From Botryllus schlosseri (Eukaryota), in assembly GCA_051294905.1 (NCBI GenBank), contig CM119371.1, positions 6,076,001-6,140,000 of the forward strand: 64,000 nucleotides of DNA. The letters run 5' to 3'. Positions within the stretch are counted from its first letter, which is position 1, and every line of letters starts with the position of its first letter. The notes under the pieces are model-generated. The model was not told the origin of the DNA and made no database searches. It saw only the letters and a program-made list of their open reading frames with translations. A program made the position numbers and the translations under genes. Below, one piece after another: positions 7,635 through 30,343 of the stretch.

Positions 7635-7654
7635 ATTTTCAAGCTCGTCAACCC

Positions 7655-11930: not shown

Positions 11931-12351
11931 ATTTTTCCGATTCTTAAAGTACGTGGTCGTGTCTTGAAAATCCGCGTCTTCGTTTTGATATGAACGAGGA
12001 GTGCCGAAAACCATTTCCGCAAAGATAGATGGATGCTAATCCAAGATTAACGCATAACGCTTCCGACAATACTTTTGGTGTGATCGCAACATTTAGGGCA
12101 CCAAAATGAAGAAACATATATTTTATGAACATATCACGTCCAGCATCTAGCGCAGGGACAGGCCACATACGGACCGCGGGTCGAATTCGTTGTGCATCAT
12201 CCTTGCACACAATCAATAATTATAGTAAGCTTTTTTCTACATAGCAATCCCACTTGTGTCAAAATTTGTGTGAAGCGTTTTTTAGGTAACCTAGCAATTT
12301 TATCAAGTAGCCAGTACAATTTTTAAAAAAGTCATTTTTGAAACCCCTGGG

Positions 12352-12677
12352 AGTAGTAATAGATAGTGCATCGCGGTGCGGACCAATGGGCTTAGAGTAT
12401 TTAATTACGTGATATCTCTTAGCCAATCAGAACGCAGAACATTATGGGTGTGTTTCCAATACGAGAGAGGTTTTGGTTGTGTGAGAGATAGCATAGTTCC
12501 AGTTCAGTAACGCTGAGATTTTATGACATCATTATTGCGTAAGTTGATTACCTTCATTATTTATTCGCTGTGCGCTGTAGATCGAATATGTCCAAGATTA
12601 CTGCTAATGATATATACGTCATAATGAATCGGATTGACCCGATAAACTGGTATAGGTTCGCACGTGAAAAACTTGAG
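12352..12677 (+). repeat. Left terminal inverted repeat (326 bp)
   Basis: Reverse complement of 30013-30337 with 2 substitutions and 1 single-base indel. Confidence 0.97.
12383..12580 (+). promoter_or_regulatory. TIR-internal Pol II promoter and leader
   Basis: CCAAT boxes at 12383 and 12423 (AGCCAATCAG), Inr-like TCAGT at 12504, GTAAGT donor at 12539, TGTAG acceptor at 12580. Confidence 0.55.
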
Positions 12678-12869
12678 CTATCTGACAATGAAATCGCCGA
12701 ATGTCAATACATGGATTGCTACAACTTAACTGAGCAACGCTATCAAATGATACAGTTATGGATACGTAAAAATGGTCGTTACGCTACGATGAAAAAACTT
12801 GAAGAATTAGTTTACAGTTGTCTGTATCAGATACCTTCGAATAGCAATTCAACTCTTCTGTTGGATTGA
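12588..12869 (+). CDS. Death-domain protein (93 aa)
   Basis: W.RFAREKLELSDNEI...NLTEQRYQMIQLWIRKNGRYATMKKL fits the death-domain pattern (W..L.R.L.LS..EI...EQ..QML..W....G..AT...L). First 30 codons lie in the TIR. Confidence 0.8.
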   Translation: MSKITANDIYVIMNRIDPINWYRFAREKLELSDNEIAECQYMDCYNLTEQRYQMIQLWIRKNGRYATMKKLEELVYSCLYQIPSNSNSTLLLD

Positions 12870-12918
12870 AAGACATAACGTACTAAGCGAAAAATAATAT
12901 TGTGTGGACTGAAGGATA

Positions 12919-13083
12919 ATGAAGATGCTCTCAGAAGACTTCAACATTGGTTTATTCGTAATCATATGCTCGTGTATACGAAACGGGTATTGCTTTTACA
13001 TCGCAAATCAAAAAAAGGACTCTGATATCGAGGAAGTATACCAAGATCTGAAAGAAGCTCTACACCTTCATCTGAACGATTAG
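12919..13083 (+). CDS. Small orphan ORF (54 aa), not in the ORF track
   Basis: ATG...TAG, MKMLSEDFNIGLFVIICSCIRNGYCFYIANQKKDSDIEEVYQDLKEALHLHLND; AATAAA at ~13110. Confidence 0.3.
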   Translation: MKMLSEDFNIGLFVIICSCIRNGYCFYIANQKKDSDIEEVYQDLKEALHLHLND

Positions 13084-13345
13084 TTAATATGCTTGTTCGT
13101 TATTACTTCAAATAAACTGAACATGTGTATTTAATTGTGTAAAATGTGTTATAAAAGTCAGTCTACGGAAGTGAATAGACAAGTCTGAAGCTGTCTATAT
13201 TGCAGCGTATTAGAGATAGATTGTGCAATAACCTCTAAATACGGAGAGTACTGAACTTGAGTCAGTGATCTGCTTATAAACACAATGCCGCGCTCTCTCT
13301 CTCTCAACGGTGCTAACCCTCCTATGTTAGAGCAATTAAATTATT

Positions 13346-13561
13346 ATGCTACCTGGAAGTTTATCAGCACTGAAACTCATTGAACTCGACACAACAATCA
13401 CAATCACAGGAAGCTTTTATTTCGACGCACATAGCAATAAAACGAATACAATTGATATCGCATTGAGCGCGCTTCCGAGACAATTCAAAATTGTTGAGAA
13501 TTGCTTGGCATCCATCTGCGATACCCGTATTGCGTATTACCATTTGGAAAAGCTCCATTAG
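13346..13561 (+). CDS. Possible small orphan (71 aa)
   Basis: ATG start with upstream TATAAA (~13275), but it overlaps the 3' end of the opposite-strand ORF. Confidence 0.2.
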   Translation: MLPGSLSALKLIELDTTITITGSFYFDAHSNKTNTIDIALSALPRQFKIVENCLASICDTRIAYYHLEKLH

Positions 13562-14045
13562 CATTGCTAGCATTCTGGAAACTTGCATTGGCATTTGACA
13601 TGCCACCAGCATTCGAATACCCAGCATTTCCAAAGCCAGCATTGGCATTTGGAAACCCCGCTTTAGCGCGATCCATAGGCTGTATTTGACCATTAGGCGC
13701 AATAAAACGCGACGTGTCTTGTAAAATCCACCCCAGCGGTGAATTTTCTACGTCATTGACGACGTTAGACGGAGAATATAATGTATATTCATCAGCGAGA
13801 TTGATTTGCTGAAAGTATTCGACGCCTTCTCGAGTATAACACGCAACCAGTTTCCCGTTATGACTTAAAGTTGCTTTGAATCTTTGTATGGCACCATTCG
13901 TTGGAAACACACGTAGTTGTCCAGGATCAATCAATTGATCGTCTGCAGTTTCAATTCGAAGCTTCGATACGTTATTGAAAACGTAAACATCTCTCCGAAT
14001 AGCTATTTCTGAGAGTTGCGACTCGGCCCGAATAGCGATAGACAT
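13485..14045 (-). CDS. Orphan protein with N/A/G/F low-complexity C-terminus (186 aa)
   Basis: ATG ORF directly downstream of the BIR gene; beta-rich N-half; tail GFPNANAGFGNAGYSNAGGMSNANASFQNASNANGAFPNGN. Confidence 0.7.
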   Translation of the reverse strand: MSIAIRAESQLSEIAIRRDVYVFNNVSKLRIETADDQLIDPGQLRVFPTNGAIQRFKATLSHNGKLVACYTREGVEYFQQINLADEYTLYSPSNVVNDVENSPLGWILQDTSRFIAPNGQIQPMDRAKAGFPNANAGFGNAGYSNAGGMSNANASFQNASNANGAFPNGNTQYGYRRWMPSNSQQF

Positions 14046-14079
14046 AATTCAATCTAAACAAAACGTATACATTAAAGAT

Positions 14080-14466
14080 TCAACGGAAACTGTTATGCGG
14101 TATACGAATAAGCACGTTGCGAAAGAACTTTGAATCCTTTGCTAATTTCATGATCAGGGGACAGGAAGGATTGAGTGTAGCATGCTCGCTCCAAACATTT
14201 GTACAATTTGTCAAGTTATCAAACAATTGCCCACACATATAGCACTTGGCATGGAAATCGAACCCTAAGTGGAATAGCCCGCAAGTTGCGAGTTCAAAAG
14301 CATCAACTCTGAGATTCTCTTTATGAGATTCGAATGATTGCAAGCGTCGATCGAAATTCATTTTAGGAAAGACAGGGTGATTTAATAAATCACAAGGTTC
14401 ATATAGTATCTCGTCCTCTGAATTCTTCATGCATTGATGCGTTCCACACGGCTTGATCTTTTCCAT
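14080..14466 (-). CDS. Single-BIR IAP/survivin-like protein (128 aa)
   Basis: RRLQSF...ELATCGLF...KCYMC...WSEHATLNPSCP: CxxC...H...C zinc ligands with BIR spacing; TATAAAAA at 14508-14515. Confidence 0.9.
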   Translation of the reverse strand: MEKIKPCGTHQCMKNSEDEILYEPCDLLNHPVFPKMNFDRRLQSFESHKENLRVDAFELATCGLFHLGFDFHAKCYMCGQLFDNLTNCTNVWSEHATLNPSCPLIMKLAKDSKFFRNVLIRIPHNSFR

Positions 14467-14544
14467 GTTTCTTGAATAGAACTGAAATTATGGACTAGCT
14501 ACTGAGGTTTTTATAGAGCTGAGCGTGTGCTTTTCCCTGATTTT

Positions 14545-14885
14545 TTTGAATCTTAAATTTAAAAATGACTGCTTCGAAATCTCGAACGTTGTACAACTGT
14601 TTCGCAACTTTCAACTATCGCAGTTTCAAATTCAAAAAATTCAAAATCACGGCTGTTTCGCAGCTGTTATTTTTGAAATTTAAAAATGATTGATCGATTT
14701 CTCGGTCGTTGCACAACTGTCGACTGCTGCCGATTTAAATTCAACGTTCTGAAATCACGCCTGTTTCACAGCTGTTATTTTTTAAATTTAAAATGATTGA
14801 ATATCACGAATGCAACTGTCGATTACTGCAGTTTCAAATTCATTGAAATCACGGCTGTTACGCAGCTGTTTCGCAGCTGTCAACT
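14545..14885. repeat. Three degenerate ~110-bp tandem repeats in the divergent intergenic region
   Basis: Recurrent AAATTTAAAAATGA(C/T)TG and AAATCACG(G/C)CTGTT(T/A)C(G/A)CAGCTGTT blocks. Confidence 0.75.
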
Positions 14886-15110
14886 AGCGTGGGATAGTTT
14901 CATAGCTGGATACAATCATGTGTTATACTATGATCGCGAACAGTACTGGGGGCTTACAAACTCACGTGAATACCTGTGCATTGGAACTTAAGTCCAAGGC
15001 TCTCAGCCAACCTAGTAGGTATTTACGGCATTTTGCCTCAGCTATGCAAGTAGTATTTAGAGATAGCAGTGATATCCAATAAGTCATTTGCGTTTTTTGA
15101 TATTTTAGAG

Positions 15111-15620
15111 CAGAGGTCTCAAACACGCGTCCTGCGAGGTCATTTTATGCAACCGCGATGGTATTTTGAATTTCGAAGTATTCGACAATATTTAACTTTG
15201 AAAACTGGAAATTCACCCTAAAACAACTCCAGAAGCCTGAAACTACTTATCAAATGTCACTATTACGTCACTTTGAAAAGTTACGACGCAATGGAAGATC
15301 AATGTATACTTCGGCGATAGGACATTATTTCTATTGCTATGACACAGTAATCATTATATTCAAGTTGTTATAGATCTGTTCTAATATTCAGAGGTAAATC
15401 CAATGCTGATTGAATTTGAATTAGGTAATAACATGATCAATACCATCGTTATCCTGAGTATGCACGAAACTCGGATTAGGCTGTAGTGTCCATTAGCTAC
15501 AAAATTATAACGCGACAGCTTTTACGATTAATTATTGATGCTGCGACTCGCGGTGCCATCAAAAAGTAAGAAATTTGCATGCAAATTTGCCCGCGGGCGC
15601 ATATGATTTTGAGTCCTCTG
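15111..15620. mobile_element. Charlie-like hAT MITE inside the Polinton
   Basis: TIRs CAGAGGTCTCAAA / TTTGAGTCCTCTG, subterminal GCCCGCGGG; 8-bp flanks TTTTAGAG / CTGTACGG match only 4/8. Confidence 0.75.
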
Positions 15621-15760
15621 CTGTACGGGATCAACTAAGTTCGTGCAGGTGCGTTTTGTTATTGTTGAGCACAGCTATTATTAGTGAATAGATTTTCAAC
15701 GGTTTAGATACGCTAGATATTCGAATACGCGACTTGACTTTAGTTAGTATCATATTGAGA

Positions 15761-17035
15761 ATGAATACTGTGCAAGTCGCTAACGAGATGAATCAAGTCG
15801 CTAATGACAATGCGAGTTGTAGTACGACTCAAGTTGACGTGATTGACCTCACTGGTGATGATAGCAGTAAAGGTAAATCGACCAACTCGATTGAAAGTTT
15901 TGATTGGCAAAACACGCAACCTTTTGTTAAAATTCATCGTGTGGATGAGAATCTACAGAGTGAAGAACCTCCAGTCAAAATTCGTTGTACGGAAGCGACG
16001 TGTGCAGAGATACGCAAAATTATGAAAGATGGTTATTTTGGTGTAGCGCCTGCAAACAAGCGAGAAGATACACAAACAGCGATGTTAAGTGGCTTGTCTG
16101 ATGATGATGATTCGAGTTCGACGATGATATCGAATATTAGATCGTTAGCTAGTGATCAAAGTGCCTCGTCTGATTCTGATTCAACAAATGACGTATCCTC
16201 GGTTGATAGTGATCGTCGACGCTCTATGATTTCTGTTATTCGACTGTTGCGCGAATCCAATACGAGTGAAATTCTGCCAAGTGAATATAGGAGCGATCGA
16301 AAATTCATTAAAGTGATCGAAAAGTTAAGTCCTCAACCCACGATTCAAAATGCTAGTTGTATGTATTCTGCACTTGAAAAAAATATCACCGAAATTTGGT
16401 ATGCCGGCCAAATGCGTAGTCTTAATTTCCTCAGAGCTGTATTCGTTGTTTGCATCTTTGAAGGTTATGTTCGCCGCAGAGATATAGCCCCGAATTTTTG
16501 GTTTGAGGGTGATTGTCATTCTGGTAAAGACATACTGACTCATATGTTTTTGACTAGAGATGTAGCAAACTATGTATTGAGTACTTTGGAAAAGTTGGAT
16601 GCATTCAGATATTACGATGCTGACAAATCTATTTGCATGTTTCCGAATTGCGGTAGTATTTTCATGAATAATGCTGTTCTCCAAGAAACTATTATGACAG
16701 TACAACGCACAGCTGTGAGCTGTGATTATGGCTTGATTAAGCCTGCCTCTTTCTGGATGTTTTGTGATGTGAAAAATGGTTCTGAGATCATGACTGAAAA
16801 GTATCCACTATCATTTGCCGGAAAAACTATTATCGTAAAATTTGGAAATAAACTTTTCGATCCGTCAGTAGAAGTGTTGAATGATCACGGTCGCGATACT
16901 GTTCTGTATTCGTTATTGAATCTTACTTCAGTAAAAACTCGCGATGCAGGCAATGAAGTAGAAACTGATATGCATGCAACGAGTTTCTATGATAAATTTC
17001 GTGAAATCAAACGTGTTTACGACGAATGTGAATGA
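15761..17035 (+). CDS. Orphan protein (424 aa), acidic/Ser-rich disordered N-half with SIM-like motif
   Basis: Long ORF, first ATG at 15761; VDVIDLTGDD; SDDDDSSS tract; globular-looking C-half. Confidence 0.8.
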   Translation: MNTVQVANEMNQVANDNASCSTTQVDVIDLTGDDSSKGKSTNSIESFDWQNTQPFVKIHRVDENLQSEEPPVKIRCTEATCAEIRKIMKDGYFGVAPANKREDTQTAMLSGLSDDDDSSSTMISNIRSLASDQSASSDSDSTNDVSSVDSDRRRSMISVIRLLRESNTSEILPSEYRSDRKFIKVIEKLSPQPTIQNASCMYSALEKNITEIWYAGQMRSLNFLRAVFVVCIFEGYVRRRDIAPNFWFEGDCHSGKDILTHMFLTRDVANYVLSTLEKLDAFRYYDADKSICMFPNCGSIFMNNAVLQETIMTVQRTAVSCDYGLIKPASFWMFCDVKNGSEIMTEKYPLSFAGKTIIVKFGNKLFDPSVEVLNDHGRDTVLYSLLNLTSVKTRDAGNEVETDMHATSFYDKFREIKRVYDECE

Positions 17036-17133
17036 ATTTGATGCATGTTGATTCAGTACTAATTCAATATTTTGATGCATGCGTGTCGATACAGTGCTAA
17101 TTGGATCTTTTTTTGTGTTGTTTGTAGCTCAGT

Positions 17134-17544
17134 ATGGATAACTTCATTGACATAAGCGACTTGTTAGATATGAACGCACCTCATCAAAGTGTAAATGCTA
17201 CGATGCAGGCTCCAAGAAAAGACTTGAACAAAATATATCAGAGTCAAAAAGAAAGCCGAAAGCGCTCGCGTCAAGACACTATGTCTTTGATCGAAGGTCT
17301 AGTTGACGATGATTTAAAGATGGAAGCTATGTGGAATCAACTTGTTTCGATGGAAGTATTTGACCAAGACTATTCGAAAAATTTTCTGAACATAATTAAA
17401 AATGTCATGAAAGATATTGAAAAACTATCTAGTGACTCGAACGCTTGCATTGTTGAGATTCAGCGTCTTGAAAAAATTAAGTTTGTATTTCTATACGGTG
17501 TAATTAAATGTAAACTGCGCTTGAAATATGGATTCAATTTCTAA
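17134..17544 (+). CDS. Orphan helical protein (136 aa)
   Basis: ATG ORF filling the gap before polB; pyrimidine-tract/AG acceptor 6 nt upstream. Confidence 0.7.
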   Translation: MDNFIDISDLLDMNAPHQSVNATMQAPRKDLNKIYQSQKESRKRSRQDTMSLIEGLVDDDLKMEAMWNQLVSMEVFDQDYSKNFLNIIKNVMKDIEKLSSDSNACIVEIQRLEKIKFVFLYGVIKCKLRLKYGFNF

Positions 17545-17592
17545 TATATGTAGTGACTATTGTCTTGATATTTTTCAGATACTAGTATCTAT

Positions 17593-20500
17593 ATGGCGCG
17601 ACGCAGGCGATATGGAGATCGAGGATTTGTGGTCGACGAAACGCTGGGTTTCGAACAAGACGGCATTGAGGTGATTGAAAGACACTACGATTCCATCATC
17701 GATTCGACCTGGACTTCAAGGAACAATGTGCAAGAAATCATCAACATTCGAATGGTCGGAAGAGCTCCGCTCGAAATTCACGCGCGTATAGCAGACATTT
17801 ACCCCAGAAGATACCGTCAGTTTAAAATGAATCTGGCGTATGGCTTTCTATTATTCAACCGTGAGACATCCAGATATAGTTATTATCATCCTCAGAGTTC
17901 ACAAGCGGTTTTTAATGTCCCTAAAACTATCATATCGCGTGAAGATTTCGATACCGTCACGAATGAGATCGATTTGACAGCGGGTTTTGAATATGCAAAT
18001 CGAGTGCGACCAGATACAAAGTTCTACTGTGCTGATGTGTTGCATATTTCTATTTACATTTATGAAATGGATAGAGCTTTACTCGGTGGAAGTACTTCCA
18101 TTTCCCCGGAGATGCAAGCACTAAGCAAATGTAACTATATCATGACTTTCCTGCGTAATCGCGAAGGCAAAGCATATGCAGATTCTCTGTGCATATTCAG
18201 ATCCATTTCATATGTGATGAAAAAAGCGCGTAATGAAACACATGTTCTGCAATTAGCCGCTCAATTCACAGCTCGTTACGATATCTCAACTGAGAACGGA
18301 GTAGCTTTCGAAGACTTATCAAAAGTTGAGGAATGTTTTCAAGTTCGAATACTGCTTTATGAAAAACGTAATCAAGGCACAGTTATGCTGCGTAATTCTC
18401 GTGCTAATGGATTGACTATACCTATTCATAGACTTGAAAATCACTGTTGCCTGATTAGGGACCTGAAATTGTACACCTCTACCTATATGTGTGATAAGTG
18501 TAAATTTTTCTTTACTAGAAAAGATGCTTTGATGAGGCATATGAAAAGCGTTGATTGTGAGCGTCCCCAAAAACAGCGATACGGTTTCGGTATTTATCGT
18601 CCTAAGATGACGGTGTTTGAGCGAATGGCGGAACAGGGAATTTTGGTTAGTACTGAAAAACGATATTACCCCTTCAGAATCGCTTATGATTTCGAGAGTT
18701 TATTAGAAAAAGAAAATCTTCGAGCTGATACACCGAAAGTCGAAATTGTCAACAAGCATGTTGCGGTATCGGTATCTCTCTCAGATAATGTTACGAATGA
18801 AACGCATACACTCATTTCTAGCGGTGATCCTAACGTTTTAATTAACGATATGGTGGGCAAACTGTATGAGATTCAAAACATCGCATCTTTGCATATGCGA
18901 CGGTTATTTGAAAAAGAATTGAAAGATTTTCGTATGCTAATTGAACGTCGTAATGCGATTGAACCAGGCAAAACTCGCTATTTAGATCGCTTGTATCGTC
19001 ACTTCGAAATTTGGTTGGATCAAATACCTGTGATTGGATTCAACTTGGCTCGTTACGATTTGAATCTTTGTAAAAAATATTTGATTCCTATTCTGCAAGA
19101 AGAAAGTGGATTTTTCGTTTTGAAACGGAACAGCGCATATCTGACTATTAGTACCAACAGATTGAAATTCCTTGACATTTCGCTATTTCTGTCACCGGGA
19201 TATAGTTTGGAAGCGTATTTGAAAATTTATGGAAATGGTGTGGACAACAAATTTTATTTTCCCTATGAGTACATGACTTGTATCGATAAATTGAATGACA
19301 CGCAATTACCTCCACATGAAATGTTCTATAGCAGTCATCGAGGCACTAATATCACCGCGGCGCAATACCAAGAATGTGTCGATATGTGGAATCGTTTGCA
19401 AATGAAAACCATGCGAGACTTCCTAACTTTTTATAACGAAAGTGACGTGATTGGCTTTTTGGTTGCGTTAGGTAATAACGCTGCCTTTTACCAAAACTTG
19501 GGTATTGACATGTTCAAATCTGCTATCAGCTTACCAAACATAGCCAATCAACTCATGTTCGCGGAATGTTACGACATCGCGCTGTTCAGTAAAGCGAATG
19601 CTGATCTCCATCAAACTGTAGTGAACAATCTATTTGGAGGTCTGTCACAGATATGTTCACGATTTGCAATGAAAGACGTAACGAAAATTCGTGAAATGCG
19701 CTACGGAGATGATGCGAAATACGTAAAAAAGATAATAGGATATGACGCAAATTCGCTCTATTTGTCATCCATTGATCAATACATGCCGTGTGGATTTCCA
19801 ATCAGGTGGTTGTATGACGCAACCAAACAAAAATTTCACAGAAAGCCAATTTATCCTGCGATGGCAGAACTCGAATGGCTGACTTATGAAAGTTATCAGC
19901 GCGGTATTTCAATTCAACACGCCTGGAACGGCAAGCAAGCTCGTCTTGGGTCGCGTCAAATTGCGGTCGATGGCTTCTCCCTTGAGCATCAATTGATATT
20001 TCAGTATCAGGGGTGTTTTTTTCATTCGTGCGATCAATGTTATAAGGACGCCGCAAACATTGAGCGACGTATTAAAACAGAAGAAATTACTGCCTATTTC
20101 GAAGAGTTGGGATACACGATAATATCAATACGCGAATGTGAATGGAATCGCATGAAACTCCACCCTGACATTGCGCAGTTTCTTTCGTCACTACAAAGAA
20201 ATGTAACAAAAGAGTATTATCTCACAGCGGACCAACTATTAGATCGCGTATTTCATCAACAGTTCTTTGGCGCATTAGAAGTCGATGCGCACTGCCCTGA
20301 TGAATTAAAAGAAAAATATTCAGAATTTCCGCCATTTTGTAAACATATCTCGGTAGATATATGCGATATCGGCGAACATATGAGCGAATATGCCCGCGAA
20401 AATAATGTGAAATTTCCGAAGACGTTTTTGGGCTCTAGTTATTTCACTGAGAAACAACTAATTACAAGTGATTTGTTGGCTTGGTACATGGATCACGGTA

Positions 20501-21459: not shown

Positions 21460-21463
21460 TAAA

Positions 21464-22084
21464 ATGAACCGTGCACGTGTTTTATACTCGCCTCTTCGTA
21501 TGATAATTAGTGGAGCTTCGTGCAGTGGAAAAACAGTTTTTGCCTATAGAATCGTACAAAATGCTAACAAGCTAATCGTACCTCGACCGAGAAAGATCAT
21601 CTGGTTATATAATAACTATCAACCGTTGTACGACAAGATGCAAGGAGTGACATTTTACAAGGGCCTAGACAAATTGAAAGATTTACAGAGAGCTAAAGAT
21701 GAACATACGTTAATTGTGTTAGATGACATGATGACAGAAGCAAGTCAAGTACGTGAACTGTTCATTAGAAAAAGTCACCACCTGTCACTCTCAGTTTTAT
21801 ATTTATGTCAAAATCTATTTCACCGAGGAGCAGGCTTCCGTGATATTACGCTGTCTAGCAACTATATAGTCATCATGAAAAATCCTCGTGATTCTGCACA
21901 GATTCGATATCTGTCACGTCAAATGTTCCCAGATAAACCAAACCTTCTCACGGAAGCTTACAAGAGAGCAACTCGTAAGGCTTATTCATATATCCTGGTC
22001 GATTTGACGCAGGAAACATCCGAACAGTATCGACTTCGCAGCAACATTTTTCCAAGCGAACGTATGACCGTGTATTCGGAATAA
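21464..22084 (+). CDS. A32-like DNA packaging ATPase (206 aa)
   Basis: Walker A GASCSGKT, Walker B LIVLDDM, RKSHH, IVIMKNPRD, Y.Y+LVDL.Q. Confidence 0.95.
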   Translation: MNRARVLYSPLRMIISGASCSGKTVFAYRIVQNANKLIVPRPRKIIWLYNNYQPLYDKMQGVTFYKGLDKLKDLQRAKDEHTLIVLDDMMTEASQVRELFIRKSHHLSLSVLYLCQNLFHRGAGFRDITLSSNYIVIMKNPRDSAQIRYLSRQMFPDKPNLLTEAYKRATRKAYSYILVDLTQETSEQYRLRSNIFPSERMTVYSE

Positions 22085-22119
22085 ATAGCGCTGTACTCGA
22101 ACATTCACTATCATTCGCA

Positions 22120-22524
22120 ATGGCGAGGTCACGTGGTGTTTTGAAAAAAACTTTAAATAATCATCTTATCAAGTTGAAGTTGCTAAAGAGTGCTAAAAAG
22201 AAGGAACGTAACGAGCTATTAACTCACAAAGCTTTTACCGCCTGTGTGTGTGAGTGTCTTCGTAACCTTGTCTCGGGCAATATAGCTATTTCAAGTACGA
22301 GTAAGGCACGATTGAAGAAGTATAAAAGTAACATTCGCAAAGTGTTGTGCTGCAAATCTCAAAAACAGAAGCAAAAAACATTACAACAGGGTGGCTTTTT
22401 ATCAGGTGAATATACATGCGATTCGATTCGATTCATGATCTAACTTTAATGATTTATAGCGATCTTAAGTGCTGCGATTCCGATTATTGGAAGTCTGTTA
22501 GGCGGATTGACTAAACATGCGTGA
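22120..22524 (+). CDS. Spliced basic core protein, adenovirus pX/pVII-like (116 aa; exons 22120-22405 and 22460-22524)
   Basis: Removing a 54-nt GT...CTAAC...AG intron gives ...QQGGFLSAILSAAIPIIGSLLGGLTKHA*, like adenovirus pX GGFLPALIPII. Confidence 0.8.
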
Positions 22525-23080
22525 ATTGTACTTTCCTCCTTTACAATCAAAAGACGCCTACGAAAAGAAATTCAATGAACATATCGCTAGCATCAGGGAC
22601 TCTGATTTGACACGCATCGAAAAATTAGCACTATTTCAACACGGCATTAGACTATTGAGAAACCTACGTGCGAATAAGAAATCGATCAAGTCGTCGACCC
22701 GCGCACCGCCAGCGGCCGCTACCAATGAAACAATTAGCGCGTCGAAACCGCCCGGAGCGGCGCTCGCTATTAATAACACATTTGACGCGACACCTCCGTC
22801 GACGCCCGAGATTTGGAGCAATTACGAAGCAGTAACTCCACCCCATACGCCTAAAACTTCAAAGAAAAAGGTTAAAAAGAAGAAGAAAGCCACTCCGTCC
22901 GCAACACCCGAGATTTGGAGCAATTACGAAGCAGTAACTCTACCCCATACGCCTAAAACTTCAAAGAAAAAGGTTAAAAAGAAGAAGAAAGCCAATAAAC
23001 CTCCTGTTAATTGGCAAAGCATTGACGGTCCGCGCAAACGAAAGCCGAATCAACGCTACACAGGAAAGTTATGGACATGA
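22517..23080 (+). CDS. Lys/Pro/Thr-rich protein with 34-aa duplication (187 aa)
   Basis: ATG ORF; repeat TPEIWSNYEAVT(P/L)PHTPKTSKKKVKKKKKA; stop overlaps integrase ATG (ATGA). Confidence 0.8.
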   Translation: MRELYFPPLQSKDAYEKKFNEHIASIRDSDLTRIEKLALFQHGIRLLRNLRANKKSIKSSTRAPPAAATNETISASKPPGAALAINNTFDATPPSTPEIWSNYEAVTPPHTPKTSKKKVKKKKKATPSATPEIWSNYEAVTLPHTPKTSKKKVKKKKKANKPPVNWQSIDGPRKRKPNQRYTGKLWT

Positions 23081-24090
23081 CGCTAGCTAACAAGAGAGAC
23101 TATTTCGATCCCCGCAAACCAAACTCCTATAGAGGAGCTTATTTACAGAATGACAAAGAATGGTTGAAATCAGAACAAAGTTATACCCTGCATTTTCCTA
23201 TACGAAAAAAATTTACTCGCGAGAAGGTGGTGGTCTCTGGAATTGATAGTCAGTTTCAAAGCGATTTGATTGATGTGCAGTCTATTTCTAAATACAATCG
23301 TGGATTTAGATATCTGGCTTTGGTTATTGATACGTTTTCAAAGTTTGTGTGGTTGATTCCAATTAAAGATAAAACTGGTCGCAGTATGATTTCTGCTTTC
23401 CGACAAGTGTTCAATGAGAGGCTGCCTTTAGTGTTGCAGACTGATAGAGGTACAGAATATACCAATCGAGCTTTTCAAAACTTTCTCAAGAAAAATAAAG
23501 TTCGTTACTTTTACACAAAAAGCGAATTGAAATCGTCTCAGGCCGAGCGTTGGATTCGCACTTTCAAGGCAATCTTGTACCGCTATTTCACGAAGAATAA
23601 CACCAGTAAATACATCGACGTGCTGCAGGATTTCGTATATTCCTACAATCACACTAAACATACGTCGTTAGGTATGGCTCCAAGTCAAGTCAATTCACAT
23701 AATCAAGAAGCTATTTGGCAAAAAATGTATGGGTTTCGACAAGCTACACTTCCCACTCTGACGAAAGGAACAGCCGTACGCATTTCGAAAATTCGCGGGC
23801 TTTTTGAAAAGAGCAGTAGACCCAATTGGACAACTGAGATATTTTATATCATTGACGCAATGGCTGGCGACCCTCCGATGTATCGCTTGCGTGACTATAA
23901 TCATGACGTTATCGATGGTAGGTTTTACAGAGAAGAACTACAGCTGGTGACCGAACCTACAGAGTGGCGTATCGAAAAGATTATAAAGACACGTCAACGC
24001 GCCAAACACCGTCAGTATTTAGTTAAATGGATAGGATATGGAGCAGAGTTCAACTCCTGGATCGATCAAAAAGATATCGTCAAACCGTAA
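23071..24090 (+). CDS. int: Retroviral-type (rve) integrase with C-terminal chromodomain
   Basis: QSDLID, LQTDRGTE, AERWIRT (D,D,E); chromodomain IEKII...YLVKWIGYGAEFNSW. Start at 23071 or 23077. Confidence 0.96.
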   Translation: MDMTLANKRDYFDPRKPNSYRGAYLQNDKEWLKSEQSYTLHFPIRKKFTREKVVVSGIDSQFQSDLIDVQSISKYNRGFRYLALVIDTFSKFVWLIPIKDKTGRSMISAFRQVFNERLPLVLQTDRGTEYTNRAFQNFLKKNKVRYFYTKSELKSSQAERWIRTFKAILYRYFTKNNTSKYIDVLQDFVYSYNHTKHTSLGMAPSQVNSHNQEAIWQKMYGFRQATLPTLTKGTAVRISKIRGLFEKSSRPNWTTEIFYIIDAMAGDPPMYRLRDYNHDVIDGRFYREELQLVTEPTEWRIEKIIKTRQRAKHRQYLVKWIGYGAEFNSWIDQKDIVKP

Positions 24091-24250
24091 CTTTTATCAG
24101 TTCATCGCTCAAGTCGTGGTTATACTAATCATAGTGATTTTTTCACTCTACAATTTGACAATCGTTCAAGAAAACAAGGAGCTTTGGGTATCGTTATTAT
24201 CATCGTGTGTGGGTTATATGTTACCAGCTCCAAAAATACCTAAACTATGA
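24038..24250 (+). CDS. Small membrane protein (70 aa)
   Basis: Hydrophobic FIAQVVVILIIVIFSLYNL and WVSLLSSCVGYMLPAP; stop overlaps the next ATG (ATGA). Confidence 0.65.
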   Translation: MEQSSTPGSIKKISSNRNFYQFIAQVVVILIIVIFSLYNLTIVQENKELWVSLLSSCVGYMLPAPKIPKL

Positions 24251-25086
24251 GTTATGTGACGTTATTTTCGAATGGTTCTATGGATATGTTTCCTGACAAT
24301 ACAACCGCACAATATGTCAATGAAATACAGACGGCTAGAAATGTAGAGAGAAATGAGATCGCTCTGACGGAGATCAGTTTTCCTAGAGATTTTGAAAAAC
24401 GTATCGAGTCACGTGCTTCTTTCGGATTCGAAATTACGGGTTTCGAACAAAGCTTTAGGAGATTTAGGTTGAAAACTGGACAATATGACTCGCTCTACGC
24501 CATGTTTAAAACCTTGGAAAGTATCAACCCTGATGTAGCAGTAAACTGTTTTCCTGAGAGCAACACCCTAACTGTGTCAATTCCACACGAAGACAGCACA
24601 GATATCTTATATCCTGGAGTGGATACGCGATATAGTATCGTGACCAGAGAGAACGATTATACAGCAACGTTGAAGAATATAGAAACTCCAGATGCCTACA
24701 CTCTCGCGACTTTCACATTACCAAATACAGCAGCGCTATCCGCATACTCTTTCTCAAAGAAAAAAATACATTTCAATTTCGATATAACACCCGTACCATC
24801 AATTGACTTTGTATACGTTCATTGCGATATTATTGAACCGCAAGAATTCAATGGTACATTACAGCGCCTATTGCGAGTGGTGAAAGTCGAGGGAGATAAG
24901 AAGGCGTTTTCCAAATACTACATAAAGCCTTTCTTCTTCCCTGTAAATATAAATAGATTGGAACGTATAAAAATATCTTTGTTAGATGTCAATGGTGTAA
25001 AAATTCCATTTCGGAGTGCACCGTCTATAGTGCCGTACTGCAATTTCGAAAGCGTGCTATTGCGTTATGAAATACATCCACATTAG
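24247..25086 (+). CDS. Minor capsid (penton-like) protein 1
   Basis: YVTLFSNGS.DMFPDNT, EIALTEISFP, YVHCDIIEPQ, LLRVV, IKISLLDVNG; possible frameshift near 25033. Confidence 0.85.
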   Translation: MSYVTLFSNGSMDMFPDNTTAQYVNEIQTARNVERNEIALTEISFPRDFEKRIESRASFGFEITGFEQSFRRFRLKTGQYDSLYAMFKTLESINPDVAVNCFPESNTLTVSIPHEDSTDILYPGVDTRYSIVTRENDYTATLKNIETPDAYTLATFTLPNTAALSAYSFSKKKIHFNFDITPVPSIDFVYVHCDIIEPQEFNGTLQRLLRVVKVEGDKKAFSKYYIKPFFFPVNINRLERIKISLLDVNGVKIPFRSAPSIVPYCNFESVLLRYEIHPH

Positions 25087-25816
25087 CAGTTCGAAATCGG
25101 ATTTTGTAGTTGACTTAGCACGCCCCATCACTGGAAAATGGGAGTTGGGGCTTGCGGAATTTTCAGTTCGTAATCAGTTTCAAACTACTTTACCGCATTT
25201 CAATGGATTGTTATGGGAATTTCAAGAGGAAAAATCATCTGCTCTGTTGGCAACGCAAAGCAATAATTATTTTTTCTATCCAAATGGGGATTATTATGAT
25301 TTCAAAAGCTTGATCGATAGAATCAATCGTAGTCAGACAAAGGTATGGATAAATCAGCTGTCAAGTTCAACAGCTATGCTAGTCATTCCCCCTAGCGAAG
25401 CAGGTGCCTTTCCGAATTTCCGAAGAAATCCAAAGAGAATCAGAAACCCGGTTTTCGTATATGGGAATCTTAAAGAACAAAATTTACCGCAAGGAAAATA
25501 TTTAACTTCGCAAATGTACCTGCGAAATGATATTGAACCTATCAGTAATTTATTGGTCTATACCGATCTCATTCGACCGCAAACAGTCGGTGATACGAAT
25601 GCACCACTATTGCGAAATATCCCTATAACAGCAGCTAACAATGAATACCAACATCACATTTTTGAGAAAATCTACTTTTTCCCTATGATCACGGAATATG
25701 CCAATCGAATTAGAATTAGTATTAGAGACGATAAAGCGGAATCTATAAATCTGAATGGTTCTGTAGTTCATATCACACTTGCTTTACGTCACGATGAGGG
25801 CACATTACTGTTGTGA
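25067..25816 (+). CDS. Minor capsid (penton-like) protein 2
   Basis: SDFVVDLARPITGKWELGLAEFS, VYTDLIRPQTVGDTNAPLLRNI, IRISIRDD. Confidence 0.85.
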   Translation: MKYIHISSSKSDFVVDLARPITGKWELGLAEFSVRNQFQTTLPHFNGLLWEFQEEKSSALLATQSNNYFFYPNGDYYDFKSLIDRINRSQTKVWINQLSSSTAMLVIPPSEAGAFPNFRRNPKRIRNPVFVYGNLKEQNLPQGKYLTSQMYLRNDIEPISNLLVYTDLIRPQTVGDTNAPLLRNIPITAANNEYQHHIFEKIYFFPMITEYANRIRISIRDDKAESINLNGSVVHITLALRHDEGTLLL

Positions 25817-26162
25817 TCGTGAAGCTTTTCAACACTATTATCGAAATCAAAGCGGAGCGGGCATAAACTACTTTCGAGGTCGAGTGCAAAGAGGTCACGG
25901 TCTAGGTAATCTATTTCGTAGTTTGGGACGTAGTGTGGTTCCCTTGATTTCCAAAGGAGCGAAAGCTCTGGGTAGACAACTACTTCACACTGGGGCTGAA
26001 GTCGCGTCTGATGTATTGGGAGGACAAAACATCGGCGAAAGCTTTAAAATCAGAGGAAATCAAGCTGCTAGTCAAGCACTTGATAATTTCCTGGGAAAGA
26101 GAAAAGCACCTAGAAAGAAAAATACCAAACGGAAAAAACGTCGTCGGGATATTTTTGATTAA
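25794..26162 (+). CDS. pVI-like / membrane-active internal virion protein (122 aa)
   Basis: YYRNQSGAG, QRGHG followed by amphipathic LGNLFRSLGRSVVPLISKGAKALG; basic tail. Confidence 0.75.
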   Translation: MRAHYCCDREAFQHYYRNQSGAGINYFRGRVQRGHGLGNLFRSLGRSVVPLISKGAKALGRQLLHTGAEVASDVLGGQNIGESFKIRGNQAASQALDNFLGKRKAPRKKNTKRKKRRRDIFD

Positions 26163-26212
26163 ATACAAATAGTAAGCCTTCCTCTTTTCATTTACAAGTA
26201 GACTCGCGGAAC

Positions 26213-27490
26213 ATGACGGAGCTGATTCATAGCAAATCTGCTGAAGGTATTCATCCGTCTTTAGATCTTTACCAGATACCACCTACTCAGACGAGTGTAG
26301 AGAAAATACGTATCATCAAGATACCTCCTGTTTCGGACAATGAGAGCGTTATAACTTTCAGATATGAGGGGTGTGGAGATTTCATAGATCTAAGCGAATC
26401 TTATTTTTTATTTCGTCTGAAACTGCTGAACGGCGATGCGGATTTAGTCGCAAATGATGATATTGGTGTTGTCAATAACATTTTAGATTCAATGATTTCA
26501 CAACTTCACATTAAAGTTGGAAATCACACGATCAAGCAGGATATTAAACTACAAGCGTATTCGGCCTACTTGAACTATCTGTTCGCCCCACAAGACGTAC
26601 AAACGTCAACTCTTTTGACACAGGGTTGGGTCAAGGATACCCCTGAGCAATTAGATGATAAAGCTATAGGCGATGATGCAGCTAACAAAGGTCACAACGC
26701 GAGAAGTTTGCCTTATGCAACCAGTAAAGTTGTTGAAATAAGAGGTCGAATACATCACGGATTATGCTTACAAGACCGTTACATTCTGGATGAGGTACCC
26801 TTGGAGTTCGAACTCACTTTGAACCCGAAAAGTTTTTTTCTGTTTGGATTGAATACTAGCAATTTCAAAATAATTAAAAAAGAGCTGCAATTGTGCGGCG
26901 TGAAAGTAAGCGAAGATGTGAAATCCGCAATGATGGTCGATGCTCCAGCTAGATATCCGTACATGGACATGAAACTTCTGAGCAGAACTTTCGCAGCTAA
27001 CACCACTCAAATCGATATTGGTAATCTGTATTCGGGTACTCTACCGACTCGTTTAATCATCGGTATGGTAGCGACTAGCGCATTCCAGGGTGCGTTCGAT
27101 AAAAATCCATACAATTTTATTCATAACAAAATGAAACGTGTCGAATTGAAAGTCAATGGTTTCCTGATACCGGAAGGTGGATACGAACTTGATTTTGAAA
27201 ACAATCACTATTCTGAAGCCTATCTCAACATGGTTCAAGGCATAGGAGCTCTCGAAAAACAGATCGGAGTCCTTACCCCGAAGGAATTCGCTAATGGATA
27301 TACTCTTCTAGTATATAACTTGCGAGCTGATGATCTAGACGACTGTTTCGAACTGCAGAAAAGCGGCACAGTTAGTCTGCGGATCACTTTTCCTGCTGAT
27401 GGTGTTGCGAGCGAAACAACTCTGCTTTGTTTCATGGAATTCCAAAAAATACTAGAAATAAGCCAAGGTCGCACGGTTACTATAATATGA
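26213..27490 (+). CDS. Major capsid protein (double jelly-roll, hexon-like; 425 aa)
   Basis: LDLYQIPPTQTSV, IDLSESY, NNILDSMISQL, PTRLIIGMV...FQG...NPYNF; lies before the protease as in Polintons. Confidence 0.93.
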   Translation: MTELIHSKSAEGIHPSLDLYQIPPTQTSVEKIRIIKIPPVSDNESVITFRYEGCGDFIDLSESYFLFRLKLLNGDADLVANDDIGVVNNILDSMISQLHIKVGNHTIKQDIKLQAYSAYLNYLFAPQDVQTSTLLTQGWVKDTPEQLDDKAIGDDAANKGHNARSLPYATSKVVEIRGRIHHGLCLQDRYILDEVPLEFELTLNPKSFFLFGLNTSNFKIIKKELQLCGVKVSEDVKSAMMVDAPARYPYMDMKLLSRTFAANTTQIDIGNLYSGTLPTRLIIGMVATSAFQGAFDKNPYNFIHNKMKRVELKVNGFLIPEGGYELDFENNHYSEAYLNMVQGIGALEKQIGVLTPKEFANGYTLLVYNLRADDLDDCFELQKSGTVSLRITFPADGVASETTLLCFMEFQKILEISQGRTVTII

Positions 27491-27939
27491 ACGGACTAGA
27501 AATAGATGAAATATTGTATAGTTACGATTCTACCAAACGACATTATCTAGGAAATTTTCCTATTGATCGACTTCCTCGGCGACCGAAACCTCCCTACTCA
27601 TTAATCATTAATTACGATGAGGCCGACGAACCAGGAAGTCACTGGGTATGCATCTACGCTGATGAACATGGAACTCATTTCCACGACAGCTTCGGTATAC
27701 CTCCGTTCAGAAATGAAATACCCTGTTTCCTAGAACCTGAAAAGTATACCAGTTCGATCAAACCATTACAGCACAAACGTTCAGAAGCTTGCGGAGCCCA
27801 CGCAATTTCATTCCTAAGCTGTCGCAGTGATGGCATGAGCACACTGTCTTATTTAGAGCACTTCGGAAAAGATAAGAAACACAACGACAGTATAGTCTGG
27901 GACTTTCTTCAAAAATTAAAACGAAATGCGAGCAAATAG
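27487..27939 (+). CDS. Adenain-like cysteine protease (150 aa)
   Basis: GSHW, HDSFG, LQ...CG (H-D-Q-C); ATG overlaps the MCP stop (ATGA). Confidence 0.95.
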   Translation: MNGLEIDEILYSYDSTKRHYLGNFPIDRLPRRPKPPYSLIINYDEADEPGSHWVCIYADEHGTHFHDSFGIPPFRNEIPCFLEPEKYTSSIKPLQHKRSEACGAHAISFLSCRSDGMSTLSYLEHFGKDKKHNDSIVWDFLQKLKRNASK

Positions 27940-28249
27940 CTTCACTGTCATACAGTACTTTGGTGATGATGAGAAGATTCAACTGAAAATCAGAGAAAAA
28001 GTCATTGTAATGAATCCTGAACGCATTCACAGACTTTCATTCGATAGCTTTCATATACGTATTTATCCACATGACCGAGATATTACATTATTCATTGGAA
28101 CTGATTGCTTACCTGTACGCTTTCCTAACCATTGTATGTACATAGACGTGTTATCGAAACATAGAATTGCTCAACAAATCAGTGAAGAATTTGTTGTTTT
28201 TCGTAGACTAAAAATCTGTGAATTTCTGACTAGAGCATCGCGTATATAA
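27926..28249 (+). CDS. Orphan protein (107 aa)
   Basis: ATG ORF overlapping the protease end; tight packing. Confidence 0.6.
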   Translation: MRANSFTVIQYFGDDEKIQLKIREKVIVMNPERIHRLSFDSFHIRIYPHDRDITLFIGTDCLPVRFPNHCMYIDVLSKHRIAQQISEEFVVFRRLKICEFLTRASRI

Positions 28250-28265
28250 GTCACAATATCTTTCT

Positions 28266-28376
28266 ATGGAACATGTCGATGATATCTTAGCTGTCGTGTT
28301 CATTGTTCTGCTTACTATTTGTTGTATACTGGAATGGATATCGTATTGCTGTCAAGAACAAGCTAGTGAAGCATGA
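28266..28376 (+). CDS. Small single-pass membrane protein (36 aa), not in the ORF track
   Basis: MEHVDDILAVVFIVLLTICCILEWISYCCQEQASEA*; stop overlaps the next ATG (ATGA). Confidence 0.55.
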   Translation: MEHVDDILAVVFIVLLTICCILEWISYCCQEQASEA

Positions 28377-28696
28377 CCATGGCTAGAATTTCCGTTGGTG
28401 CACAGTTTGATTCGAGTCGTAATTATGAAGAAATGATTGTATTACCTAACGTGAGATCAATTACCATTCCCTATACGTGTATACTTTTCCATTATGATAA
28501 TAGAATTGTAGTGAAACCCATAGAAGATTGTGTTACGCACTCGTCGCGTAATATCATTGTCTGTAAAGACGAACATTATCGTGTGCTTTATAAATCACCC
28601 TTAGTTATTGATTTCAAGGGTAAGGCAATTGTTGTTGGTAATATAATCCTATTCCAAGTGTTTTGGGATGGATGTGTTCGATTCATAACTCAATAA
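28373..28696 (+). CDS. Orphan beta-rich protein (107 aa)
   Basis: ATG ORF whose TAA stop is part of an AATAAA signal. Confidence 0.6.
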   Translation: MTMARISVGAQFDSSRNYEEMIVLPNVRSITIPYTCILFHYDNRIVVKPIEDCVTHSSRNIIVCKDEHYRVLYKSPLVIDFKGKAIVVGNIILFQVFWDGCVRFITQ

Positions 28697-28818
28697 ATCA
28701 CTGATTTCGACTCGTGTTCTTTTCTGTTCGGTCGTGTTTATCCTGAGGCGCATCCCTTAGCTAGTAGAGAAATGCAGATTCGTCAATAAACCTTCAGTTA
28801 CGTAGATTCGTCAATAAA
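28692..28818 (+). terminator. Three polyadenylation signals in short repeats
   Basis: AATAAA at 28692, 28785, 28813 within repeated (GATTCG)TCAATAAA(TCACTG). Confidence 0.55.
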
Positions 28819-28982
28819 TCACTGTTTCTAACTCGCGCTATTTATCATATAACCAACAAAGACACATTATGGAGTTTTTATTACAAAAGGTTGCGCGCAG
28901 TCTTTTCAAAGCACACCGTTGTGAGTGACAATCAAAAAATGATGATATTGCGTCAGTCATTAGCAATTCAACGGAAAAATAG

Positions 28983-29054
28983 TGGAGAATACGGGAATTG
29001 AACCCGTGACCTACTGTTTGCAAGACAGCCGCTCTGCCGCTGAGCTAAATCCCC
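28983..29054 (-). tRNA. tRNA-Ala(UGC)
   Basis: GGGGATT TA GCTC AGCGGCA GAGC G GCTGT CTTGCAA ACAGT AGGTC ACGGG TTCAATT CCCGT ATTCTCC A; complete cloverleaf, G3:U70, A73; TTTTT 3 nt downstream. Confidence 0.92.
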
Positions 29055-29077
29055 AAGTGATAGTGACGGCTTAAGTG

Positions 29078-29377
29078 TTAGTTTTCAACAGTAGCATTAG
29101 CAAATTTAAGAGATAGCTCTACTGTAGCCGTTGACTTGAAAACAACTCGATGTTCTTCTTTCGTTACTTCAGTATCGTATATCTTCATTGTTTTTCTTTC
29201 GTCATGATCACATGGTACCAGCTCTGTATAATTACATCCTTCACATTCTACTATAGTGAAAGGATACGATATTTCAACTGAATCCACACCAAGCATTTTC
29301 ATACATTTCGAATATACTATCCATGATACGGTCTTGGATCCAATAAACTTATTACCGTTTATTCGCACGGAACCCAT
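29078..29377 (-). CDS. Orphan protein (99 aa)
   Basis: ATG at 29377 (MGSVRINGNKF...), TATAAA ~40 nt upstream, CEGC/C motif. Confidence 0.55.
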   Translation of the reverse strand: MGSVRINGNKFIGSKTVSWIVYSKCMKMLGVDSVEISYPFTIVECEGCNYTELVPCDHDERKTMKIYDTEVTKEEHRVVFKSTATVELSLKFANATVEN

Positions 29378-29414
29378 GATGTAAATATAACAAATAGTAA
29401 CTGCGATTGAGCCT

Positions 29415-29900
29415 TTATAAGTGATACCACGTGACAAAATGCTTCCATCCGCCATTTTCTTCAATCCACTTTAGTTTCCTAGTAGCAATGTAATTCCCGA
29501 CTGTTTGTATGATAGCATCTATATGCCTGCTATTATTGCGAGCAAGTATGCCGCCAAGCACATAGAGAGACACAATCCGACCCCAATTTTCTTGATTATC
29601 TTTGAACCTTCCATCGGCTATCATCAGGAACATTCGCTCAACGGGTGAATATTCTTTATCTTTCTCATTGACTTCAATATCACTATAACGAATGCGCTTG
29701 GAGACTGCGTTTAGGATGGTTCGATATCGCTCAAATATTTCATTAGCAACTCGTCGTAAGGTTTTCTCCACCTGCGTATTTGCTTTAACGCTTGAGCCGT
29801 CGATTTCATACATGATAAAATTTCTAGCTAAGGAATATGCCGTGGATATAATTTCATCCTTTTCTTCAGTGAGCGCAGGTGATACTCGCAATAACGCCAT
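29415..29900 (-). CDS. Bcl-2 family protein without C-terminal TM anchor (161 aa)
   Basis: BH4-like LARNFIMY, BH3-like LRRVANEI, BH1 NWGRIVSLYVLGG, BH2 WIEENGGWKHF; GCCATGG start context. Confidence 0.93.
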   Translation of the reverse strand: MALLRVSPALTEEKDEIISTAYSLARNFIMYEIDGSSVKANTQVEKTLRRVANEIFERYRTILNAVSKRIRYSDIEVNEKDKEYSPVERMFLMIADGRFKDNQENWGRIVSLYVLGGILARNNSRHIDAIIQTVGNYIATRKLKWIEENGGWKHFVTWYHL

Positions 29901-29954
29901 GGCTCTGAAGATAACAGTGAGCTCATGTGTACCAACCAAGTCAACGCAATACTT

Positions 29955-30012
29955 TTATAAGTGATACTACGCCACAAAATGCTTCCATCCGCCATTTTGT
30001 TCTATTCAATTT
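29955..30012 (-). pseudogene. Remnant C-terminus of a second Bcl-2 paralog
   Basis: 50/57 nt identical to the Bcl-2 3' end; reads N*IEQNGGWKHFVA*YHL*. Confidence 0.8.
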
Positions 30013-30337
30013 CTCAAGTTTTTCACGTGCGAACCTATACCAGTTTATCGGGTCAATCCGATTCATTATGACGTATATATCATTAGCAGTAATCTTGGAC
30101 ATATTCGATCTACAGCGCACAGCGAATAAATAATGAAGGTAATCAACTTACGCAATAATGATGTCATAATATCTCAGCGTTACTGAACTGGAACTATGCT
30201 ATCTCTCACACAACCAAAACCTCTCTCGTTTGGAAACACACCCATAATGTTCTGCGTTCTGATTGGCTAAGAGATGTCACGTAATTAAATACTCTAAGCC
30301 CATTGGTCCGCACCGCGATGCACTATCTATTACTACT
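30013..30337 (-). repeat. Right terminal inverted repeat (325 bp)
   Basis: Inverted copy of 12352-12677. Confidence 0.97.
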
Positions 30338-30343
30338 CCTGGG

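Follow-up and report, generated by a model that had tools for sequence, protein, structure and literature searches.

Three cell-death-related genes, one of them encoding a death domain alone, in the terminal arms of a Polinton/adintovirus-like element of Botryllus schlosseri

The element and its three cell-death-related genes

What do three genes with domains of the animal cell-death machinery do near the ends of a virus-like mobile element, and at which step of the host pathway would their products act? The question is raised by a stretch of 64,000 nucleotides (nt) from Botryllus schlosseri (GenBank assembly GCA_051294905.1, contig CM119371.1, positions 6,076,001 to 6,140,000 of the forward strand; hereafter, the window; all positions given below are counted from its first letter), which is free of any N and in which an earlier note had placed an endogenous Polinton/adintovirus carrying a death-domain (DD) gene, a BIR gene and a Bcl-2-fold gene at 12352-30337. 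The analysis of target-site duplications and terminal inverted repeats (TIRs) gave exactly these bounds. The element is 17,986 bp long, its first letters are AG and its last letters CT, and it is flanked by a 6-bp direct repeat, CCTGGG, on the left (12346-12351) and on the right (30338-30343). The left TIR (12352-12677, plus strand; 326 nt) and the right TIR (30013-30337, minus strand) were delimited by self-comparison; they are 98-99% complementary, with a single 1-nt insertion or deletion between them. A 6-bp duplication on both sides, and TIRs at the ends of an element of 15-20 kb, are among the features by which Polinton/Maverick elements are recognized.

The reading frames between the TIRs include an ATPase, an integrase and a capsid gene and are intact: no stop codon or frameshift interrupts any gene of the element (break count, zero), and the coding density is 80%. 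No second copy of any of its genes was found in the rest of the window. The Polinton/adintovirus-like identity holds: the element is complete and integrated, and we read the locus as a recent germline insertion, apparently intact, of a virus element of the Polinton/Maverick (adintovirus-like) kind. By their coordinates, the three death-related genes lie in the accessory arms between the TIRs and flank the core genes, as the earlier note had described.

The DD gene (12588-12869, plus strand; open reading frame (ORF) from 12570) encodes 93 amino acids (aa) from its ATG and consists of a death domain alone. It matched the Pfam family Death (PF00531) with an E-value of 1.5e-10 and 41.5 bits (gathering cut-off, 22.6), and the PDB sequence search returned TNFR1 (28.8 bits), RIPK1 (19.7 bits) and FADD (17.4 bits). 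The AlphaFold model (pLDDT 77.7; alignment of 13 sequences) was compared with Foldseek, and the first 38 or so PDB matches were all death domains (TM 0.6-0.7). These searches agree on a death domain. In the viral structure library BFVD, Foldseek with the same model found no DD-like protein (best E-value, 0.9).

The nearest relatives of this domain are the N-terminal prodomains of caspases. Apart from one 83-aa protein with 94% identity, found by the word-index search on two short ENA metagenome contigs (L001 and L002; one of them belongs to PRJEB22134, Shandong aquaculture metagenomes), the exhaustive HMMER search (16 matches among 1.84 billion representatives) gave as best matches proteins of 480-640 aa that have a death domain at the N-terminus and a caspase domain at the C-terminus (Death+Peptidase_C14; DD-caspases), which account for five of the eight best cellular matches. 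The highest was P0009, from run SRR25569784 (51 bits, 46% identity); P0016 and the Styela clava proteins XP_039251078, XP_039254012 and LOC120330782 are further examples. DD-caspase prodomains scored 46-51 bits, in contrast to 17-29 bits for the death domains of receptors and adaptors, and their alignments start at residue 1-3 in both partners. In a neighbour-joining tree of the DD segments, without support values, the domain groups with the prodomains of P0009, P0010 and P0015, away from TNFR-type death domains. A similarity search found no caspase domain after the DD in the window, in L001 or L002, or in L005, a third metagenome contig described below; the possibility that the DD continues into a caspase exon was rejected, as no caspase similarity is present anywhere in the window. 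Judged by sequence comparison, the DD-only protein looks like a caspase prodomain without its protease. Since its best relatives are DD-caspase prodomains, it would probably act where an initiator caspase is recruited, and not at a death receptor.

The DD gene is conserved in the lineage of the element and is under purifying selection. Between the window and L001, 9 synonymous (8 in the case of L002) and 5 non-synonymous differences were counted; the ratio of non-synonymous to synonymous substitution rates (dN/dS) is 0.11-0.12 against the two contigs (binomial P = 1.8e-4). The copies are 92% identical, and identity is higher in the DD coding region (94.7%) than in the non-coding DNA downstream (90.9%). 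These two results, the low dN/dS and the higher coding identity, are the basis for regarding the DD-only gene as a conserved and selected gene. The last ~90 nt of the TIR before the DD start (12496-12587) are conserved in both contigs as well, while the contig sequence further upstream is unrelated to the TIR of the element. As a separate observation, another ENA contig of 2.3 kb (L005, ERZ23491400) carries a stand-alone DD ORF at 1420-1725 (101 aa, 39% identical to the DD of the element).

The second gene, on the minus strand of the left arm (14080-14466), encodes a 128-aa protein with one BIR. It matched PF00653 with an E-value of 1.6e-9 and 38.6 bits (gathering cut-off, 22.9), and NAIP, XIAP (BIR2) and ML-IAP were matched in the PDB sequence search together with cIAP BIR1 domains (3m1d and 3m0a; E-value, about 1e-5); the BIR fold is thus secure. 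The zinc ligands, read from the ORF, are kept (C-x2-C-x16-H-x6-C), and Pfam detected no RING E3 domain in the 128 aa.

The third gene, in the right arm, is a member of the Bcl-2 family (29415-29939, minus strand; first ATG at 29900). It matched PF00452 with an E-value of 8.5e-18 and 65.2 bits (gathering cut-off, 31.4). Its PDB sequence matches were BCL2L10, Bcl-2, Bcl-xL and Mcl-1, the best being pro-survival members, and a BH3-like stretch, BH1 and BH2 align with BCL2L10, Bcl-2 and Bcl-xL. The Bcl-2 fold assigned in the earlier note is accordingly confirmed. Many animal Bcl-2 genes have an intron just after the Trp of BH2; the ORF of the element is continuous past this position. Given these scores, chance is not tenable as the source of the three domain matches. 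The searches turned up the DD on L001 and L002 and relatives of the capsid gene; no relatives were found for the BIR gene (IMG/VR scan) or for the Bcl-2 gene (word-index search and IMG/VR scan). In a collection of 15 billion proteins, exact look-ups of 14 proteins of the window gave no match.

How the three proteins might act

In the left TIR, CCAAT boxes are present at 12383, 12423 and 12456, a TATTTAA sequence at 12398 and a GTAAGT donor-like site at 12539, the latter within the segment conserved in L001 and L002; the start codon and the first 30 codons of the DD gene lie inside the repeat. These promoter-like motifs recur in the right TIR, as does the ATG with its 30 codons, directed inward to the Bcl-2 gene. 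There, the 30 codons (30013-30102) continue into a remnant (29954-30012, minus strand; 59 nt) that is 88% identical to the 3' end of the Bcl-2 gene by repeat analysis. It adjoins the TIR and is the sole degenerate piece of the element, and together the codons and the remnant form a 53-aa chimeric ORF upstream of the Bcl-2 start. We infer that an earlier second Bcl-2 copy was overwritten as the TIR extended from the left end; the remnant and the chimeric ORF are evidence of a past duplication and of repeat extension. If the right TIR drives the Bcl-2 gene, the leader would need splicing or re-initiation.

We lean, with modest confidence, to the view that the three host-derived death genes keep the infected cell alive, the DD-only protein being a decoy in DD-caspase recruitment, the Bcl-2 protein a soluble binder and the BIR an interaction module. 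The genes would have been taken from the animal cell-death machinery, placed in the arms next to the TIRs and expressed early from promoters in or near the TIRs, and the infected cell would thereby stay alive. The DD-only protein would be copied from the N-terminal domain by which a host DD-caspase is recruited, minus the protease; by DD-DD contacts it may take up the activating platform or cover the prodomain of the caspase itself, and the caspase would not be brought together and hence not activated. The Bcl-2 protein, with its several BH motifs, would bind and hold BH3 or Bax/Bak-type proteins, and would do so as a soluble protein because it has no anchor. The single BIR is more likely to be an interaction module than a classical inhibitor that binds IAP-binding motifs. 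The platform could be a FADD-like adaptor, since the Hydra DD-caspase is reported to be recruited by the FADD homologue HyFADD (bioRxiv 10.1101/2019.12.13.875351), or a DD-NLR, since one from a sea cucumber is reported to work together with a DD-caspase in lytic cell death (PMC13673367, citing Liu et al. 2025).

As a side observation on DD-caspases, a locus of 21 kb in Styela clava (L010; OZ123517.1, 18835355-18856797) holds at least three intron-less Death+caspase genes in tandem and represents an expanded DD-caspase family in this ascidian; no repeats common to this locus and the window were found. Simple capture of the 5' part of a DD-caspase gene is plausible, because the Styela clava genes are intron-less and tandemly clustered.

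We put forward a broader version of the decoy proposal tentatively, as a possibility in which we place less confidence. In it, a stand-alone DD-caspase prodomain decoy would be the missing DD member beside the DED, CARD and PYD decoys; promoters and leaders in the TIRs would drive the DD gene (left) and the Bcl-2 gene (right) inward; and DD-caspases would form a first-line pathway of antiviral cell death among tunicates and other invertebrate deuterostomes.

Several observations count against the proposal that the genes protect the cell through such a decoy. For the DD, the model has five helices, not six, together with a disordered tail, and the Pfam match ends at profile position 72 of 86; identity to any DD-caspase is only 41-46%; and the tree rests on about 80 columns, without support values. 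Moreover, over-expressed death domains can nucleate death complexes. For the Bcl-2 gene, the 53-aa chimeric upstream ORF would impede translation if no splicing of the leader took place; the protein lacks a C-terminal membrane anchor, as the ORF ends 9 residues after the BH2 Trp; and Bax (35.2 bits) scores near the pro-survival members (36-41 bits). A source of an anchor was sought in the overlapping ORF128 and rejected, as the hydrophobic stretch of ORF128 is N-terminal and is not a C-terminal tail. For the BIR, the alignments with NAIP BIR2 and BIR3 show that a conserved Trp is replaced by Leu, and the acidic run before the His by Thr/Asn/Cys. These replacements lie between the second Cys and the His, in a segment which is conserved in the compared NAIP BIRs and which we take to line the peptide-binding groove. 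As this segment is altered, binding of caspases or of IAP-binding motifs in the classical manner is doubtful for the BIR of the element. The "layered anti-death system" of the earlier note is a putative one.

The sites of action originally suggested for the three proteins, that is, a DD decoy at death receptors or adaptors (TNFR1, FADD, RIPK1 type), a BIR that blocks caspases directly and a Bcl-2 protein that blocks mitochondrial permeabilization, make up the strongest rival, which we nevertheless consider unlikely. The best solved-structure matches of the DD are indeed TNFR1, RIPK1 and FADD, and the BIR matches XIAP BIR2 and ML-IAP. However, the PDB ranking of the DD matches is biased, because the PDB holds no DD-caspase, and the higher scores of the DD-caspase prodomains, in the same N-terminal register, speak for caspase recruitment. 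In the case of the BIR, a direct block of caspases is disfavoured by the replaced Trp and acidic residues. The earlier assignment stood for each of the three folds, and the sites of action attached to it were refined or weakened. Note that if FADD recruits DD-caspases in the host as in Hydra, the decoy would act at the adaptor anyway, and the two readings overlap.

Less probable again is that innate-immune or NF-kB-type signalling, and not death, is modulated, the DD disturbing complex assembly and the BIR being a type-I adaptor-binding BIR. The loss of the Trp and the acidic run of the compared NAIP BIRs and the matches to cIAP BIR1 domains are consistent with such a BIR, death domains serve both kinds of pathway, and the sea-cucumber DD-NLR/DD-caspase pair is described as an immune sensor. 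However, no MyD88/IRAK-type death domains were present among the DD matches (PDB and HMMER), and the Bcl-2 protein has no obvious place in this scheme.

We give still less credence to the opposite effect, in which the genes promote death or lysis, for example in the service of particle release or of a selfish, addiction-like module. In its favour, death complexes can be seeded by isolated death domains, the score of Bax is near those of the pro-survival Bcl-2 members, and adintoviruses carry further genes related to death or active on membranes, such as homologues of the gasdermin C-terminal domain and PLA2 (PMC8502044). On the other side, the BH3-like stretch has Ala-Asn where Bcl-2 has Gly-Asp, the membrane anchor is absent, and the genes adjoin the TIRs outside the virion block, a position which by analogy may be that of early genes. 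In addition, BIRs are not known to promote death. That the three genes are mere passengers, host fragments picked up by recombination without use to the element, is very improbable: the Bcl-2 remnant and the chimeric ORF do show that the arms are recombination-prone, and the related contig L003 shares the virion module and stops short of the arms, but the three ORFs are intact in an element with 80% coding density, and purifying selection acts on the DD across copies with 8% divergence.

Core genes, other reading frames and surroundings

All core genes are on the plus strand. A 1288-aa ORF (17593-21459) shows the family-B patterns of Exo I-III and of the polymerase motifs A, B and C in canonical order and is a probable family-B-type polymerase on the basis of these motifs; sequence searches of Pfam, PHROGs, NCBIfam and the PDB gave no match to it. 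It is followed by a packaging ATPase of the Pox_A32 family (21461-22084; 33 bits, above the cut-off), an integrase with an rve core (PF00665, 51 bits) and a chromodomain (23071-24090), and the major capsid protein (26213-27490), which was assigned by its homologues and a weak double-jelly-roll Pfam match. Its relatives in the Logan assemblies (runs SRR25569780, -83 and -84) are 69% and 46% identical, and a Patella caerulea protein named major capsid protein in UniRef is 29% identical. The runs that gave P0009 and these capsid relatives, the Styela clava matches of the DD and the Shandong aquaculture source together point to an ascidian-like host. A cysteine-protease-like ORF (27427-27939) has as its only PDB match the African swine fever virus S273R protease, to the core of which the similarity is weak (E-value, 0.0023).

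Relatives of the element were also compared at the level of gene order. The contig L003 (3 kb) is colinear with the element over the virion module and ends before reaching the arms, and the gene order recurs in a distant Patella element (L004). Three virion-module ORFs (24247-26162, plus strand; 279, 249 and 127 aa) precede the capsid gene, the last two being conserved in L003; two 107-aa ORFs (27926-28696, plus strand) follow the protease-like ORF, the first being conserved in L003 (47% aa identity). Between the ATPase and integrase genes, the ORF list gives two small basic ORFs of 107 and 187 aa (22120-23080, plus strand); in the latter, a 102-nt tandem repeat (22805-22994; 1.9 copies, 98%) duplicates a 34-aa Pro/Lys-rich segment. 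The IMG/VR scans with the capsid, polymerase, Bcl-2 and BIR proteins and with a DD alignment gave no match, and the JGI metagenome scan with the capsid alignment gave only relatives of 25% identity, none of which carries a DD, BIR or Bcl-2 gene. No named adintovirus protein was among the matches in any homology search made.

In the left arm, the BIR gene and ORF186 (13485-14045, minus strand), which lies directly downstream of it and encodes a protein with an Asn/Ala/Gly-rich C-terminus, point outward from a non-coding spacer of 1.27 kb (14467-15733). This spacer separates the divergent BIR and ORF433 genes and contains three degenerate repeats of about 105 nt (14576-14890) that have no Rfam match and could be regulatory. 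ORF433 (15734-17035, plus strand), which precedes the polymerase, contains a single IxCxE motif with acidic and Ser-rich tracts after it; its position and motif style match those of the "Oncoid" ORFs described for adintoviruses. It is followed by ORF136 (17134-17544, plus strand; from the ORF list). In the right arm, the Cys-rich ORF128 (29078-29464, minus strand) shares 50 nt with the 3' end of the Bcl-2 gene. None of these four ORFs has a family match.

A gene for tRNA-Ala(UGC) (28982-29054, minus strand), followed by a run of five T, sits between ORF128 and the virion module; ARAGORN and Rfam (69.3 bits) both detected it, in agreement with the tRNA reported in the earlier note. A link with codon use was considered and is not evident, as GCA makes up 27% of the Ala codons of the element, without marked preference.

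Just outside the target-site duplications, a 53-nt inverted repeat (83%; 12282-12334 and 30501-30553) brackets the insertion site, and the insertion may have taken place within a small foldback or MITE-like repeat. The wider neighbourhood is transposon-rich. Gypsy-type pol ORFs with reverse transcriptase, RNase H and an integrase zinc domain are present at 5370-9379 and 46105-48594 (both on the minus strand), and Pao/BEL-type pieces, split over several ORFs, lie further to the right; these Gypsy- and Pao/BEL-type stretches are richer in GC (0.44-0.48, versus about 0.39). A short ORF with a weak aldehyde-dehydrogenase match (50694-51038, minus strand; 23.6 bits) may be the one exon of a host gene observed in the window.

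Comparison with known systems

Decoys made of a recruitment domain alone are known from other death-fold subfamilies, namely viral DED-only FLIPs, cellular CARD-only proteins, and viral and cellular PYD-only proteins. The DD of the element resembles these in having no effector part, in being nearest to a caspase prodomain and in sharing its N-terminal start; it differs in that its subfamily is the death domain proper and in that its decoy role is predicted from sequence. African swine fever virus encodes a Bcl-2 homologue and a single-BIR IAP homologue, and baculoviruses and other large DNA viruses encode IAPs. The combination of a Bcl-2-fold gene and a one-BIR gene in one genome is thus common to African swine fever virus and the element, whereas the element is far smaller, integrates and adds a DD gene. 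No relationship of its BIR and Bcl-2 genes to those of large DNA viruses was seen, the PDB search matches being cellular proteins only. In adenoviruses the genome is linear and ends in terminal repeats, close to which death-control genes are transcribed inward. The likeness of their terminal early regions to the element, which the earlier note had pointed out and which lies in the terminal repeats and the death-control genes near the ends, is one of analogy only; no sequence relationship to adenovirus was found.

Among mobile elements, BIR and BCL2-like motifs are known from Burro, a group of giant Gypsy retrotransposons in planarians (PMC6431247). These are likewise invertebrate mobile elements with apoptosis-regulator domains; however, Burro is a retroelement with these domains inside a giant polyprotein, whereas the present element is DNA virus-like and has separate small genes. 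The closest known systems are the adintoviruses and Polintons, which share with it the terminal repeats, the rve integrase, an A32-like ATPase and a capsid gene, and whose protein-primed-type polymerase and protease have a probable polymerase and a protease-like ORF as counterparts in the element. Adintoviruses also encode Bcl2 and IAP homologues and LxCxE-type ORFs upstream of the polymerase, and tRNA genes are flagged in related viruses (Starrett et al. 2021, PMC8502044); the element likewise has a Bcl-2 gene, a BIR gene, an LxCxE-like motif in ORF433 and a tRNA gene. In contrast, the main text of PMC8502044 mentions neither a DD gene nor tunicates, and the element is set apart by having all three death classes together and by the DD start codon inside its TIR. 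Of the anti-apoptotic genes in Polinton-like elements to which the earlier note had pointed, Bcl2 and IAP homologues are already published; for a DD gene in Polinton/adintovirus elements, for DD-only viral proteins and for the triple set, no report was found in the literature searched. Within that literature, the DD-only gene, its affinity to caspase prodomains and the three-gene combination appear to be the new parts.

Polintons and adintoviruses are thought to be real animal viruses, and little is known of how they handle the host cell. An intact copy with three death-pathway genes supplies concrete, testable candidates, of which the DD-only gene is the most informative: through it the element is tied to DD-caspases, a class of invertebrate caspases for which descriptions of a role have only begun to appear. 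Its presence suggests a DD-caspase pathway important enough to antiviral defence that a virus would copy the recruitment domain. If this is confirmed, the principle of the viral caspase-prodomain decoy would extend to the death-domain subfamily proper.

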